From sequence record PP456877.1: DNA of 64,000 bases; one strand, 5' to 3'. Below the pieces are notes generated by a model that was given only the letters and a program-made list of their open reading frames with translations, was not told where the DNA came from and did no database searches. Position 1 is the stretch's first letter. Every line of letters starts with the position of its first letter. Made by a program: the position numbers and the translations under genes. Shown piece by piece: positions 5,811 to 51,123 of this stretch.

Positions 5811-6644
5811 CTAATATTTTCTTCGTTCGATGCCCTGTAGTTTCGCGAATGTGTCGATCTTGTACTGGTCAACAAAATGCCAGGCTAGATCGGTAAGTGC
5901 ATAGATGTCCGGACGTTCGTATTTACCGAAGTCTGGTTTCTCACGACTCAATTGAAAATCGATGAACTGATCTAATATAGGGCAACGATCTATCAGATCC
6001 TGTTCAGTAGCCCCAACCTTATCATTAACCAGTTCTTGGATACGTTTATAAAGGATAGGATCTGTTAGAAGAGGCAGTAGATCATGGAATACCATCGGTG
6101 GATGTTCCAGACTTTCACGGACCCAAATTGCAGCCAACAGAGGACGAAGAGAATAGAAGTATTTCTTCATCCGGACTTTCTCATCTGACAACCAACGCAT
6201 TTTGGTTTGTTTGGCCATCGAGATATAATGCATGTAACTCGATTCAGGGATGAAGTGCTTTAGCGCAGCATCACGGATTAACTTGTAGTCCCGATCAACC
6301 TTACGGTAAACGATTGGGGAGTTTAGCCATTCCAAGAGAGTGGGGTTAGACTTGTAAGCAAGCTGAAGAGTCTTAGTGATACTCCAACCAGCTAGGTCTA
6401 GTTCTTTAGACACCATCTCTTCAATAGTATCACGTGCTTCATTATCCACACGAACATAATGACTCGGATGGTTAACGTAAATGAAACGAACATCATAGTC
6501 ACTATTGGTTGAAGCAAAGCCCCATCCACGACTACCGGACTCACAAGCATAAATAATCTTTACACCATATTTCTTTTCGATACGGTCTAGTTCTACATTA
6601 ATCGTTACCCGCATCTCATCGTTAACTGGATGACGTTGATCCAT
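5811..6644 (-). CDS. Pol-beta superfamily nucleotidyltransferase (Nuc-transf/RlaP, T4 NrdC.11-like)
   Basis: YACESGSRGWGFASTNSDYDVRFIY, DLAGW, KSNPTLLEWL, KKYFYSLRPLLA. Confidence 0.9.
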   Translation of the reverse strand: MDQRHPVNDEMRVTINVELDRIEKKYGVKIIYACESGSRGWGFASTNSDYDVRFIYVNHPSHYVRVDNEARDTIEEMVSKELDLAGWSITKTLQLAYKSNPTLLEWLNSPIVYRKVDRDYKLIRDAALKHFIPESSYMHYISMAKQTKMRWLSDEKVRMKKYFYSLRPLLAAIWVRESLEHPPMVFHDLLPLLTDPILYKRIQELVNDKVGATEQDLIDRCPILDQFIDFQLSREKPDFGKYERPDIYALTDLAWHFVDQYKIDTFAKLQGIERRKY

Positions 6645-7051
6645 TATCCACCAACCTTTTCAAATTTGAGTTTTTCTTCTTTACCTGTGTCCAGATACAT
6701 GAACATCGATGTACCCAGCAAGTTGTATACAAACCAACCTTTGCTCACAAGTTCCTCTTCGAATTTCAGTGGTGCCGATAGTTCGCATATAGCCTCGTAC
6801 GGGATGACAATAGGCTCTTTCTCGGGCTTAGTAAGAATCAGTGCATGATCTGCAAGCTTCAACCATTGCTTGCGACTACTGATACCAAGACCAATACTAA
6901 ACTCTTCACCTGGATCTTTTCCGTTAAAAAGGCTACAGCGAGTTTCTTTGGTTACTCTATTACCGGCGATACCGATCGTGAGAGGATCAGGAAAGACCCC
7001 CATCAGTTCAATAACCATTTCAAGTTGACGCTTCAGTTCAGTGTTGTTCAT
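6644..7051 (-). CDS. hypothetical protein
   Basis: 135 aa ORF, stop overlaps the next start. Confidence 0.8.
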   Translation of the reverse strand: MNNTELKRQLEMVIELMGVFPDPLTIGIAGNRVTKETRCSLFNGKDPGEEFSIGLGISSRKQWLKLADHALILTKPEKEPIVIPYEAICELSAPLKFEEELVSKGWFVYNLLGTSMFMYLDTGKEEKLKFEKVGG

Positions 7052-7159
7052 AGGACAAATTCCTTTGTATTGTATTTACGTACTACATCGGTCCACTAGG
7101 CAGGAGTCTGTGCATAGTAGTATTCGCTGAATATCCCAAATGAACCATAGGGAAATAAA

Positions 7160-7177
7160 GCCTCCCCAAAGGGAGGC
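7160..7177 (-). terminator. intrinsic terminator
   Basis: gcctccc-caaa-gggaggc after thyA. Confidence 0.85.
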
Positions 7178-7184
7178 ATTTATG

Positions 7185-8651
7185 TTAGACAGCAACTTTA
7201 CCAGCAATGTGTGAATGATATTCGTAGTTTTCGATAACAAAATCATCTACACCAATTTCCCGAATATCTTTACCAATAGCTTCTTGTTTGAAACGAATAG
7301 TTGGTAGAACCTTCGGTTCACGAGTTAATTGAAGATCAGTCTGTTCTTGGTGATTAGAGTAAATATGTACATCACCACCAGTCCAGATAAACTCTTCAGC
7401 AATCATATTCATTTGGTTAGCTAACATGTGAGTCAGCAGACTATAGAACGTGATGTTAAAGGGTTTTCCTAAGAAAGTATCACAAGATCTTTGATAGAGT
7501 TGACAACTGATGGCTCGTTTTGGAGCACCATGTTGATCCAGCCATTCTACTACTGCTTCATCTGTAGCCTTTTCATAACCACGACAGACACGCAGAAGTG
7601 CTTTAACCTGCTCAGCACTATCGAATGGAGGTTGACCACGAGTAATCTCACCACTAATCTTATCATGATAAGCATCAGCTTCGAACTGGGTTTGGTCTAG
7701 AGCTTGCACTCGTTCATCTACGGTCAGTTCACGGGTCCAGAACTGAATAAATGCGTGGCAAGGTGGGAGTGCCTGCTCATCAATAAGATGTGGCGCCCAT
7801 GCACAAACAATGATCCGACGAGAATCCGGGTTGGTGCGAAGTTGATCGATGATGTCTTGGATTTGGTCGATACGTCGAGTAACCACGCATCTATCGGTTT
7901 CCATGGTTGTACCTGGGATATCCGCCACGAAGTCAAAACCACGCTTCTCATAATCAAACCACTCATATTTAGGGATTACACGAGTGTCTTCAAGATTACG
8001 CCATGTCTTACCGTAAACAGCACCTAGATCGCCACCGACCAGACGCTCTGGTTCTTTATGCATCAAAGCACGATACAGTCGCTTGTTATATTCAGCACGA
8101 ATACCTTCAGGATTTTTGGCTTCATCGAACCCTTCAGTAGCGAACCTATTCCACGACGTTACGCTAACTCCAATGATGTATTGGATTTCCTCACGGTTAA
8201 CTGGATATTCATCCCAGAAGGCCTGAATAGTCTCTGGAGTCATACCCGACTCGAATTCCGCTACAGTCTCAATGAATGGAGTAGAGTCATCGTTCATACA
8301 ATGTAAGTACATTACGAATGGGGCACCAATGAGGGCAGTTACTGCTTTAAGAACGGCCTCATCGGTCATCGGCTCATATACTGCGGTTTCAGGTTTAACC
8401 CACTCGTTCCAGATGCGTACACCATTAGCGATCAGGTAATCCACCTTAGTATCACCTGACAGCATCCAGAACAATTCATGAATTACAGAAGCTAGATGAA
8501 TCTTCTTGGTGGTTACAACTGGTAGCCGATTATTACGCAGACTATAACGTTCTTGTTGACCAAACATGCTCTGAGTACCAGTACCAGTACGGTCACCTTT
8601 ATGTACACCGTGTTCTTTAACTAAACGGATTGAATTAAGATATTGTTCCAT
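7185..8651 (-). CDS. thyA: thymidylate synthase with large in-frame insertions
   Basis: GDRTGTGT, PVVTTKK, RIWNEW, GDLGAVYG, NPDSRRIIV, ALPPCH, YQRSCD, GDVHIYSNH. Confidence 0.97.
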   Translation of the reverse strand: MEQYLNSIRLVKEHGVHKGDRTGTGTQSMFGQQERYSLRNNRLPVVTTKKIHLASVIHELFWMLSGDTKVDYLIANGVRIWNEWVKPETAVYEPMTDEAVLKAVTALIGAPFVMYLHCMNDDSTPFIETVAEFESGMTPETIQAFWDEYPVNREEIQYIIGVSVTSWNRFATEGFDEAKNPEGIRAEYNKRLYRALMHKEPERLVGGDLGAVYGKTWRNLEDTRVIPKYEWFDYEKRGFDFVADIPGTTMETDRCVVTRRIDQIQDIIDQLRTNPDSRRIIVCAWAPHLIDEQALPPCHAFIQFWTRELTVDERVQALDQTQFEADAYHDKISGEITRGQPPFDSAEQVKALLRVCRGYEKATDEAVVEWLDQHGAPKRAISCQLYQRSCDTFLGKPFNITFYSLLTHMLANQMNMIAEEFIWTGGDVHIYSNHQEQTDLQLTREPKVLPTIRFKQEAIGKDIREIGVDDFVIENYEYHSHIAGKVAV

Positions 8652-8851
8652 TACTTGATCCTCGGATTGTCTACTAGTCCACAGTTGAACCAGAGATGTT
8701 TATCATGGCGGCGATCATCACTAATAGATACGATCGTACCCTTACCATCTTTAAAGTTAATAATCAATGCCCGAACTCGGCCATGGGAGAGAGCATTGAA
8801 AATTTTGTACGACTTTACACTGAATGCGATTCTTTCATCAAGACGATCCAT
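8651..8851 (-). CDS. small hypothetical protein
   Basis: 66 aa, GAGG SD, coupled to thyA start. Confidence 0.75.
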   Translation of the reverse strand: MDRLDERIAFSVKSYKIFNALSHGRVRALIINFKDGKGTIVSISDDRRHDKHLWFNCGLVDNPRIK

Positions 8852-8878
8852 ACTTCATTCCTCTAACCTTACTGGTAA

Positions 8879-9172
8879 TCATAGATCAACCTCTATCCGT
8901 TTGTATTTGATATTAACTGGAATACCTAATTCATTTTTTACAAGATTAAATGAGTTTTTCGATGGAGTGTATGTAGCAACTATAACGGCTTGACTATCAA
9001 CTACAGCTACATCTCGCCATTCCATGTGCATGTTATCGAAATCATCTTTACCCATGATCAAGTAATAAGACGTATCATTATGCGTAATGGTATTTTCAAA
9101 CGGTCTAATTACAAAAGCACTTAAACTAGACGGTATACGGTGTCCTACTTGTTCAAGTGTAACTGTATACAT
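8879..9172 (-). CDS. hypothetical protein
   Basis: 97 aa, GGAGG SD. Confidence 0.8.
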   Translation of the reverse strand: MYTVTLEQVGHRIPSSLSAFVIRPFENTITHNDTSYYLIMGKDDFDNMHMEWRDVAVVDSQAVIVATYTPSKNSFNLVKNELGIPVNIKYKRIEVDL

Positions 9173-9193
9173 AAAACCTCCTAGACGATATAC

Positions 9194-9213
9194 GGGAGTC
9201 CCGAAGGACTCCC
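9194..9213 (-). terminator. hairpin with cUUCGg loop, probable terminator
   Basis: gggagtcc-cgaa-ggactccc. Confidence 0.7.
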
Positions 9214-9277
9214 TAAGCGCAACTAACCAATCGGCTAGTATCTTACCTATATTATTAGTCTATCAGAAGTATTTTTA

Positions 9278-9985
9278 TTACAGACCAATACGAGTCAAAA
9301 TTTCAGCCCAACCTTTCTCTTTAGCATATCGCAATAGGCTATTTTCAATATGGGTTTCACTATAGACAATAGGTTCATGGCCACCTTGCACATGATACAT
9401 TGTTAATGGTTCCACCACATGTTGACTAGACCAAGCATCGTATAAACGATCATTGATTTTAATCACCACATATACCATCAATTTATCGTCGATGTCAAGA
9501 TCAATACCTGCTACAAATGCATTAACATTGGAACGCACTTGGTCAGCAGTTAGTTGCACTTGCAACCCGCCATGTACTTCAAATTCGATATTACAGATAT
9601 TCTTATTTAACCAAGTATACACTGCCTGATTAGCATATGTCTCAATTGGATCACTACTACGTAAATCTAATAATGGTCCATATGTTTCTAATGATGAGAC
9701 ACTGGTATCAACTAGGTCATTCAATGAGTATTCGGTACTAGAACAACTATCTAAAACACAGATAGTGTTATCCTCGATATGGATAGGTAATACCTTGAAT
9801 ACCACATTAGCAACATTAGGTAATGACGTATCTGGTTCAGAACTATTGAATGGAGTATAAAATAATCGATCAGCCACTTCAGTATCAATAGTTGATACAT
9901 CCATTGGAATGAATCCATTAAGATCTTGTTTGATTACGTCATTGTGTCCAATTCCAGAAAAAGATAAATACATTTTCTCAGACAT
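9278..9985 (-). CDS. hypothetical protein
   Basis: 235 aa ORF. Confidence 0.8.
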   Translation of the reverse strand: MSEKMYLSFSGIGHNDVIKQDLNGFIPMDVSTIDTEVADRLFYTPFNSSEPDTSLPNVANVVFKVLPIHIEDNTICVLDSCSSTEYSLNDLVDTSVSSLETYGPLLDLRSSDPIETYANQAVYTWLNKNICNIEFEVHGGLQVQLTADQVRSNVNAFVAGIDLDIDDKLMVYVVIKINDRLYDAWSSQHVVEPLTMYHVQGGHEPIVYSETHIENSLLRYAKEKGWAEILTRIGL

Positions 9986-9993
9986 ATCCGTAC

Positions 9994-10251
9994 CTATTTA
10001 TTTACACAGATTAGAGTATGTTCTACTTTACTAGTACTAGAAGAAAAATAACGTAATAGAACACCATCACTGATTTTTACAGTCTCTACATTATTACGAA
10101 TAGCACTTGCTTTAGCTAGTTTTTGAATGCGCTCAATCGCGCTAAAACAAGTAGCCATGTCAGAGAACTCAGCGGTTGACTGCGATGCACCATTGGCTTG
10201 ATAACCAGCGATACTGATACTACTAAAAAGAATTGCTAAAGTTGCATTCAT
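9994..10251 (-). CDS. small exported protein
   Basis: N-terminal hydrophobic signal-like segment; two Cys in the mature part. Confidence 0.7.
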   Translation of the reverse strand: MNATLAILFSSISIAGYQANGASQSTAEFSDMATCFSAIERIQKLAKASAIRNNVETVKISDGVLLRYFSSSTSKVEHTLICVNK

Positions 10252-41273: not shown

Positions 41274-41291
41274 GCCTCCCCGAAGGGAGGC
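41274..41291 (-). terminator. intrinsic terminator, cUUCGg loop
   Basis: gcctccc-cgaa-gggaggc. Confidence 0.85.
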
Positions 41292-41298
41292 ATTTATG

Positions 41299-41991
41299 TC
41301 AATTACCACTATAGGTACCTTCAGTACCTTGTTCTTTACGTCTTACGAGGCGTTGATGAATTGCACTAAGAGCACGGTCCATTGAATTAATCACTACCTG
41401 ATTCTCTTCACATGCAAATGGGCCTGCTTGATAACCTTCAAATAAATCTTTAACGATTTTAAGTAGACAGTCAGCAGTTAGGCCATTTACACCAACTTCT
41501 GGAACAAGTCCATTCTGCATTAGGATAACACATTCAGTCAGATTATCACCAGGCATAGCAGCTGGGTTAGTCTGAGCATTATAACCAGTTACCACATAAC
41601 GTTTAGTTGCACCTGATTTCTGATCAATGCCACTTGCTTCAATATTTAGACCATTTTCATCAAAATGTTCATGGCCATAAATACCTTGCATAGTTACCCA
41701 TCCACCATCTTCTTGATAAATCCAATCTACCCCATTTACATGATAAGTATCACCTGGTTCAGGGTCAGCTGGAAGATCTTTAGTAGTGGTTAATGCACGG
41801 ATACGCGCATATTCTTCAATTGCAATTTGTACATCAGTTGCAGTAATTTTCTTCTCAGGTTCAGTAGCTTCGTCTTGCTGAGACTTATCACTACCTTCCT
41901 TTTGGTCATTATCCATATCAGAAGCATCTACTGTACTTTTAGCTTCTTTACTTTCTAAGGAAGCTAACCACTCAAGATTAGGTTTAGACAT
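41299..41991 (-). CDS. tad1: Tad1-like nucleotide-signal sponge domain with N-terminal extension (phiKZ gp184 position)
   Basis: QNG..E.GVNG...LLKIVKD...YQAGPF...EN...AL...R...R...GT aligns with recalled CbTad1; start set at MSKP with GAGGT SD. Confidence 0.7.
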   Translation of the reverse strand: MSKPNLEWLASLESKEAKSTVDASDMDNDQKEGSDKSQQDEATEPEKKITATDVQIAIEEYARIRALTTTKDLPADPEPGDTYHVNGVDWIYQEDGGWVTMQGIYGHEHFDENGLNIEASGIDQKSGATKRYVVTGYNAQTNPAAMPGDNLTECVILMQNGLVPEVGVNGLTADCLLKIVKDLFEGYQAGPFACEENQVVINSMDRALSAIHQRLVRRKEQGTEGTYSGN

Positions 41992-41998
41992 ACTTACC

Positions 41999-42304
41999 TC
42001 AATAAATGAAACCACCAATGTAAAGTGACACTACAACATCGGCAACCCGAGGGTCTTGTGAATATTTAGATTTGACTAGTTTAATAAGTTCGGCTCGATT
42101 TTTAATGAAGCCTAGTTTCTTATTATCAATTTCTTCAGCTTCAATTAGGAAGTCATTTAACTTCTTCTTACTACCCAGTACATTAATCACCATTTGATCA
42201 ATAACTGCATTAGTATTTGATAGTTTAGTTAACTCTTGTTCAAAAACTTCCTTACGTCCTTCTGATCCAATTAGAGCTAGACCGATCTTTTTAAGTAGAG
42301 ACAT
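41999..42304 (-). CDS. hypothetical protein (gp183 position)
   Basis: 101 aa ORF. Confidence 0.75.
   Translation of the reverse strand: MSLLKKIGLALIGSEGRKEVFEQELTKLSNTNAVIDQMVINVLGSKKKLNDFLIEAEEIDNKKLGFIKNRAELIKLVKSKYSQDPRVADVVVSLYIGGFIY

Positions 42305-42362: not shown

Positions 42363-51123
<8,761 letters not shown>

Follow-up and report, generated by a model that had tools for sequence, protein, structure and literature searches.

The gp184 homologue and its neighbours

We analysed a 64,000-nucleotide stretch of sequence record PP456877.1 (hereafter, the window), from Pseudomonas phage vB_Pae3705-KEN49, and focused on one gene at positions 41299-41991 that encodes a homologue of phiKZ gp184 (tad1). 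The gene lies on the minus strand, as do all of its features described below. Taken together, the evidence indicates that the protein is very probably a Tad1 signal sponge that is packaged in the virion, processed by the head protease and injected into the host cell. Its identity, Tad1 fold, pocket residues and conserved protease site come from our analysis, while its capsid location, proteolysis, injection and anti-defence role are taken from the literature; which site is cut, the ligand spectrum and the oligomeric state are what we infer. An earlier reading of the same DNA (the original prediction) had described the product as a Tad1-like anti-defence sponge fused to a head-protein-like N-terminus.

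The list of open reading frames (ORFs) and the translation reveal an intact ORF of 230 codons plus a stop, with an ATG start at 41991 and no internal stop codons. A GAGG ribosome-binding site, read from the sequence at 41997-42000, is located 5 nt 5' of the ATG and overlaps the stop codon of the upstream gp183 homologue (41999-42304). The gene is 100% identical at the DNA level to positions 103299-103991 of the vB_Pae3705-KEN49 record PP456877.1, whose coordinates exceed those of the window by 62000, and the record's annotation agrees with the window ORFs over the compared region (record positions 62001-111000, 49 kb). It is also 98.7% identical to phiKZ ORF 184 (AF399011 PHIKZ184). At the protein level, 228 of 230 residues are identical to phiKZ gp184 as found in Protein Data Bank (PDB) entry 8y6v, chain I, with A23 for S and A75 for T as the two differences. 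This identity, together with the published description of the phiKZ protein (PMC11297242), confirms the statement in the original prediction that the gene is phiKZ gp184, a minor inner capsid protein.

The neighbouring genes are homologues of phiKZ gp181 (2240 amino acids, tail lysin), gp182 and gp183, and then of gp185 to gp188 (thymidylate kinase). The position after the gp181-gp183 homologues is thus the same as in phiKZ, and the order gp181-gp182-gp183-gp184 ... thymidylate kinase is conserved in two distant phiKZ-like contigs.

The C-terminal half is a Tad1-family domain

Because sequence matches and predicted fold agree, we assign the C-terminal half of the protein (residues 109-230; 41302-41667) to the Tad1 family; the domain was delimited using the domain model, Foldseek, HMMER and phrog_2428. 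The resemblance to Tad1 greatly exceeds what chance would give. Searching PDB sequences with phmmer retrieved five distinct Tad1 chains (E 2e-6 to 4e-6, residues 117-226), and a profile built from 20 relatives matched Tad1 chains at E 1e-12 to 1e-10. The match to phrog_2428 covered residues 119-227 (E 3e-18). A word-indexed protein search with the C-terminal domain alone did not find stand-alone Tad1 proteins, which were found by the exhaustive profile search.

The full-length AlphaFold2 model was weak, with a predicted local distance difference test score (pLDDT) of 59 and Tad1 matches whose root-mean-square deviation (rmsd) was about 16 A, and a model of the domain only was used in its place for fold comparison. 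This model of residues 111-230 (pLDDT 89.1, predicted template-modelling score 0.79) contains strands at 116-122, 129-135 and 153-158 and helices at 173-189 and 195-220, that is, an antiparallel beta sheet followed by two long helices. The top 20 Foldseek matches were all Tad1 (E 4e-7 to 2e-5; template-modelling score (TM) 0.65-0.72), and the best match outside Tad1 had an E value of 0.12. The Tad1-like C-terminus was therefore borne out by both of the comparisons that the original prediction had proposed, with hidden Markov models and with Foldseek against Tad1 structures.

The closest characterized proteins are CbTad1 from a Clostridium botulinum prophage (7uav, 7uaw, 8smd, 8kbe-h) and CmTad1 (8kbb-d), which have the fold in common with the gp184 domain across the same TM range at a sequence identity of 20-28%. 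Unlike the gp184 homologue, these proteins are only about 122-132 amino acids long and lack an N-terminal module, and packaging is not known for them. Acb2 is likewise a small phage protein that sequesters cyclic nucleotides, and Pfam places its helical hairpin with that of Tad1 (PF24729), but no Acb2 structure was among the Foldseek matches, and Acb2 binds cyclic tri-adenylate (cA3).

The N-terminal half carries the capsid anchor

Residues 1-108 are acidic, with 24 D+E compared with 10 K+R, and contain the SLE, ATE and AIE motifs that the original prediction had pointed out (SLE13, ATE44 and AIE59). All the other sequence features that it listed are present as well. A motif scan delimited an N-terminal peptide (residues 1-13; 41953-41991) that ends in S-L-E13 and is a candidate short propeptide or targeting peptide, which the head protease would remove. 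It is followed by an acidic linker (residues 14-73; 41773-41952), defined by pLDDT, charge and motifs, which contains SKE16, ATE44 and AIE59, is weakly conserved and varies in length among relatives. The linker is predicted to be mostly disordered, the full-length model giving residues 1-63 a pLDDT of less than 50. The half ends in a small beta unit (residues about 74-108; 41668-41772) with predicted strands at 82-85, 88-92 and 98-100.

A gp184-like chain is physically present in the capsid, as seen from the near-identical protein in capsid model 8y6v. The part of gp184 modelled there (chain I) amounts to only 34 residues, which superpose on the small beta unit of our full-length model with an rmsd of 1.5 A, a TM of 0.80 and 97% identity; because the identity is 97%, the modelled stretch contains residue 75 (A75/T75). 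Since this N-terminal beta stretch is all that is modelled, the capsid anchor belongs to the N-terminal half, and the Tad1 domain lacks order in the capsid map. The beta unit of residues about 74-108 is the capsid-bound wedge resolved by cryo-electron microscopy (cryo-EM) under hexamer 1, beside gp86. In the published structure, gp184 is described as consisting mostly of beta strands and as being inserted in the inner vertex-binding complex with gp86 on one side and the centre of hexamer 1 on the other; the head protease gp175 is reported to cut it, and the cleavage product is longer than the modelled part, a difference that was put down to flexibility (PMC11297242). Its mainly beta-stranded modelled part sets it apart from the vertex-binding complex's other, helix-rich members.

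As a claim about sequence, the head-protein-like N-terminus of the original prediction fails. A BLASTP comparison of the N-terminal half with gp120, the major capsid protein of phiKZ, gave a non-significant best E value of 0.15, PF25620 is absent from the N-terminus, and gp184 is also missed by a profile made from the capsid-protein-like N-termini of other Tad1 fusions (see below). On these grounds (E 0.15 to gp120, no Pfam family and a profile miss) we rejected a resemblance to the major capsid protein, and 'head-protein-like' is true only insofar as cryo-EM puts part of the N-terminus in the capsid. A further stretch, residues 112-138 (window 41586-41666), is identical at 11 of 27 positions to gp120 residues 157-181, which surround the maturation cut of the major capsid protein (E163/N164); given its E value of 0.15, this likeness was taken as chance.

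A conserved candidate protease site between anchor and sponge

The protein contains seven S/A/G-x-E motifs, among them SLE13, SKE16, ATE44, AIE59 and GHE108, the last of which went unnoticed in the original prediction. This candidate head-protease site, G106-H107-E108 (41668-41676), falls between the anchor and the sponge. An equivalent S/A/G-x-E motif is present at the residue-108 junction (alignment columns 128/129) in all 20 relatives, compared with 16 of 20 for the residue-13 column and only 2 and 5 of 20 for the motifs at residues 44 and 59. Cleavage after E108 would yield a Tad1 domain of 122 residues, about as long as the chains in solved structures of stand-alone Tad1. On this pattern of motifs, we consider it about evenly balanced whether the head protease cuts at E108 and thereby frees the Tad1 domain.

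Experiments published on phiKZ bear directly on the fate of the C-terminus. C-terminally FLAG-tagged gp184 was packaged in virions and was detected by western blot in translation-blocked cells after infection (PMC10449902), so the C-terminal part of gp184 is injected. A recent preprint names gp184 Tad1, finds it non-essential by transposon sequencing and reports that the head protease liberates its C-termini, which are injected (bioRxiv 10.1101/2025.11.23.690004). Both this preprint and a review (PMC13282480) describe an N-terminus wedged in the capsid and an injected C-terminus freed by the protease.

A different reading of the motifs, which we regard as unlikely although it deserves some weight, is that the sponge is never cut from its anchor and that the protease acts only upstream, after E13, E44 or E59. 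The capsid would then hold the wedge together with a flexible, invisible Tad1 domain, and the two would be let go whole as the head empties. Such upstream sites exist, the one at residue 13 in most relatives, and a flexible attached domain would suit a modelled part that is shorter than the proteolytic product (PMC11297242). However, the sole S/A/G-x-E position kept in every relative is exactly the border between wedge and sponge, and if gp86 and the hexamer centre hold the wedge fast, injection of a C-terminal tag is hard to explain without a cut in the chain. The liberation of C-termini by the head protease (10.1101/2025.11.23.690004) likewise speaks for a sponge that leaves its anchor behind.

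Signal-pocket residues are kept and trinucleotide-pocket residues are changed

We mapped ligand-site residues using HMMER alignments and the residue roles given in bioRxiv 10.1101/2023.11.15.567273, with offsets verified on all named residues, and counted residue conservation over 169 aligned Tad1-family members. The pocket of CbTad1 for glycocyclic ADP-ribose (gcADPR) and cyclic dinucleotides (F82, N92, R109, R113) corresponds to Y187, N197, R214 and R218 here. These residues lie in a helical hairpin (residues 173-220; 41332-41475) together with the changed positions E195, N202, S209 and A210. Both N197 and R214 are kept in 168 of the 169 family members (the exception being a gap in a partial sequence), R218 is kept in 163, and 164 have an aromatic residue at position 187.

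The hexamers formed by CbTad1 and CmTad1 bind two cyclic trinucleotides as well, by means of an Arg and a Thr (R90 and T97 in CbTad1; R88 and T95 in CmTad1), whereas the gp184 homologue has E195 and N202 at these positions. The Arg is missing in all 21 close relatives that cover the column (E in 18, D in 2 and P in 1) and occurs in only 12 of 80 stand-alone members sampled. The trinucleotide pocket is a trait of a subset of the Tad1 family, and its absence is no bar to membership. The hexamer contact of CmTad1 (M102/W103/K106) is replaced by S209, A210 and Q213, and these contact residues are not conserved across the family.

Judging from the aligned residues, the balance leans slightly towards a domain that sponges gcADPR and dinucleotides and is without the known trinucleotide site, and that would thus differ from CbTad1 and CmTad1 in its handling of cA3-type signals. 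The predicted failure to sponge such signals follows from the changes at E195 and N202 and at the hexamer contact (S209, A210). With tad1 still in place, a phiKZ mutant was reported to be sensitive to a cyclic-oligonucleotide-based anti-phage signalling system (CBASS) of the cA3/NucC type and to be rescued by Acb2, a cA3 sponge (10.1101/2025.11.23.690004), which agrees with Tad1 not sponging cA3. The original prediction had suggested that changes at Tad1-conserved sites (AYH to ATK, MW to SA and F to Y) alter ligand preference; all three substitutions are present in the HMMER alignment with the C. botulinum prophage Tad1, and an altered preference is plausible, although the changes in the trinucleotide pocket appear more telling than the three sites that were named.

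The same residues bear on a second proposal of the original prediction, that the sponge fold has been co-opted as capsid cement; the protein would then be essentially structural and would no longer bind signals. Its stoichiometric presence in the inner vertex-binding complex (PMC11297242) and the changed hexamer-contact and trinucleotide-pocket residues speak for such a role. But it is the N-terminal beta unit rather than the Tad1 domain that shows order in the capsid, and the gcADPR/dinucleotide pocket, which a purely structural role would not need, is invariant in the family. The gene is also dispensable by transposon sequencing (10.1101/2025.11.23.690004), and activity against Thoeris and CBASS has been reported (10.1101/2025.11.23.690004; PMC13282480). 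We therefore consider a role as cement extremely improbable.

Probable transcription unit and source of the sponge

A terminator-like GC-rich hairpin with a T run is located 8 nt past the stop codon (41274-41291, minus strand), and a second such hairpin follows the gp181 homologue (44378-44405, minus strand); both are consensus matches only. The two hairpins flank the gp182-gp183-gp184 homologues, which suggests, as far as such motifs can tell, a three-gene transcription unit separate from the gp181 homologue, with the first hairpin as its probable 3' end. Overall, five terminator-like sites were found in 4 kb, compared with 2.0 expected. A sigma-70 promoter scan revealed no excess over the shuffled expectation, a result that is uninformative where a phage uses its own polymerases, and no tRNAs were found in the window. 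Elsewhere in the window, G+C content rises to 0.39-0.43 at positions 6001-10000, compared with about 0.30-0.35 in the flanks, in a region with a 488-amino-acid 'thymidylate synthase' (7185-8651) and a nucleotidyltransferase (5811-6644).

Placement in a structural unit (gp182-gp184) between terminator-like hairpins implies that the full-length protein is made in quantity during infection. It is accordingly conceivable that the sponge acts mainly as newly synthesized cytoplasmic protein and that its presence in the virion is a by-product of co-production with head proteins, all the more if the virion delivers only a small dose (about 55-60 protomers). Nevertheless, a dedicated capsid-binding unit and a junction protease site are kept in all relatives, and other phages fuse a Tad1 domain to unrelated N-terminal modules, one of them capsid-protein-like; together, these observations point to selection on delivery. 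In addition, if transcription is late, an early burst of signal would be met by injected protein only. New synthesis as the main source of activity thus appears improbable, if less so than a role as cement.

Tad1 domains are fused to diverse N-terminal modules

The Tad1 profile matched 4458 cluster representatives at E <= 0.001. To survey domain architectures, we drew a sample of 168 Tad1-domain sequences from the profile search (including P0022-P0168). Of these, 80 are stand-alone domains, 12 have a C-terminal extension (for example, P0122, 320 amino acids, with the Tad1 domain at residues 7-124) and 76 carry the domain at the extreme C-terminus after 50-460 extra residues. The N-terminal modules of these 76 extended proteins fall into at least four unrelated classes and about 34 singletons.

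The phiKZ class, which has the beta wedge, comprises 9 members, and a shorter class of 15 members has the N-terminal peptide and junction motif without the wedge. Among the wedge-less proteins are syntenic gp184 homologues (P0005, P0007-P0019; 196-207 amino acids; locus L001:8001-8609), which lack the only part of gp184 that is ordered in the capsid and retain both the S/G-x-E site of the N-terminal peptide and the junction site. A third class of 10 members corresponds to phrog_11049. The capsid-protein-like class (8 members) is so called because its N-terminus matches the family of phiKZ-type major capsid proteins (PF25620, with E values as low as 1e-24; phrog_3231).

Fusions of the capsid-protein-like type were seen at L006:10001-11131 and in P0085, P0098, P0091, P0041, P0088, P0079, P0159 and P0111. 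The first of these is encoded on a 253.7-kb viral contig (IMG/VR), and its residues 27-198 align with gp120 residues 265-468 (E 2e-10), inside the insertion domain of gp120 (residues 248-472); its C-terminus is 37% identical to the Tad1 domain of the window. The whole capsid-protein-like fusion occurred in none of the 50,697 phage records searched. Separately, the phiKZ-like contig L001 encodes a 373-amino-acid protein (L001:9902-11023) five genes downstream of its gp184 homologue, whose residues 206-351 score just short of the cut-off for the major capsid protein family (26.0 bits; cut-off, 27). No gene of similar size is present at the equivalent place in the window, where the gp185 and gp186 homologues encode 184 and 134 amino acids.

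An S/A/G-x-E motif was found within 30 residues upstream of the domain in 56 of the 76 extended proteins; for background windows the figure was 137 of 261, although the comparison is rough and takes no account of relatedness. We tentatively propose that the layout of anchor, protease site and sponge is one case of a widespread design, of which the phiKZ lineage would have a version restricted to dinucleotides and gcADPR with the trinucleotide pocket lost, although we rate this generalization as somewhat less than an even prospect. No papers on N-terminal Tad1 fusions were found in the literature searched, and the family-wide fusion pattern may be the one lead here that is new.

Discussion

Several observations weigh against a packaged, processed and injected sponge, or against particular parts of that reading. 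A local Pfam scan of the whole protein, each half and four relatives returned no family and only noise (WASH-7_C, E about 0.1), and PF24729 (Acb2_Tad1_hairpin), for which 16 of 20 relatives have precomputed matches, is marked 'weak' in both of those looked up. A cleavage product that exceeds the modelled part in length (PMC11297242) would also fit a single cut further upstream. The predicted loss of the trinucleotide pocket depends on a pair of residues and on alignments whose identity is about 25%. Finally, five complexes per vertex would imply about 55-60 gp184 copies per capsid, and because this dose is small for a sponge that acts stoichiometrically, newly made protein may matter as much as injected protein.

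Despite these points, the original prediction of a sponge that is loaded into the head, matured by the prohead protease and active from the start of infection fits the Tad1 comparisons, the 8y6v map and the published proteolysis and injection results (PMC11297242, PMC10449902). In the mechanism that we propose, the N-terminal half (the SLE13 peptide, the acidic linker and the beta unit of residues about 74-108) would bring the protein into the prohead and lodge it as a wedge in the inner vertex-binding complex, with gp86 on one side and the centre of hexamer 1 on the other. The protein would be processed by gp175, the head protease that cleaves after S/A/G-x-E, with G-H-E108 as the putative release point of the 122-residue Tad1 domain. 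Once freed, the domain would exit the head with the DNA and be in the cell ahead of any phage gene expression. There it would sequester the gcADPR of Thoeris and the cyclic dinucleotides of CBASS in the Y187/N197/R214/R218 pocket at the dimer interface, and with these signals sequestered the host effectors would never be switched on and would stay off.

Proteins delivered in this way have well-known precedents. The T4 internal protein IPI* and P1 DarA/DarB share a head-targeting N-terminus, a prohead protease cut, co-injection with the DNA and action before phage expression. They differ from gp184 in having unrelated folds and in blocking restriction enzymes, by direct binding or other means, whereas gp184 sequesters small-molecule signals. 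Within phiKZ itself, gp93, gp162 and gp86 resemble gp184 in having N-terminal segments in the inner capsid surface, S/A/G-x-E processing and C-termini that are released or injected. However, these three proteins have helix-rich domains of the inner-body type with no known activity, whereas gp184 carries a domain of known biochemical function.

The packaged-sponge reading of gp184 is a rediscovery of a published system and was already known. According to the review PMC13282480, gp184/Tad1 blocks CBASS and Thoeris, and Tad1 is the one known anti-defence gene that AntiDefenseFinder flags in phiKZ (PMC11724313). Both bioRxiv 10.1101/2025.11.23.690004 and PMC13282480 cite Li et al. 2024 (Nature 635:719) for phiKZ Tad1; phiKZ goes unmentioned in the 2023 preprint of Li et al. 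(bioRxiv 10.1101/2023.11.15.567273). The details added here are the conserved G-H-E108 junction, the contrast between the pocket that is kept and the trinucleotide and hexamer residues that are lost, and the fusion of Tad1 to at least four kinds of N-terminal module.

Naming in databases trails the published work on gp184/Tad1. The gene is a 'hypothetical protein' in the vB_Pae3705-KEN49 record and a 'structural protein' in phiKZ; among the 20 listed of 47 matching phage records, it is called 'hypothetical protein' in all except phiKZ ('PHIKZ184') and one that is unannotated. The name 'ABC transporter ATPase', given to the Tad1 chain 7uav A in the PDB and to genes of Agrobacterium phages OLIVR5 and OLIVR6, is misleading.

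A published mechanism was thus correctly reconstructed from sequence alone, and the gene is a textbook case of a jumbo phage meeting the signalling immunity of Thoeris and CBASS with a sponge carried in its virion. Such a sponge explains how signalling defences are silenced by a phage whose vesicle and nucleus shield its DNA but do not stop these defences. If the N-terminal modules of the wider family are head-packaging devices, then many uncultured large phages would bring their signal sponges into the cell pre-made in the virion.

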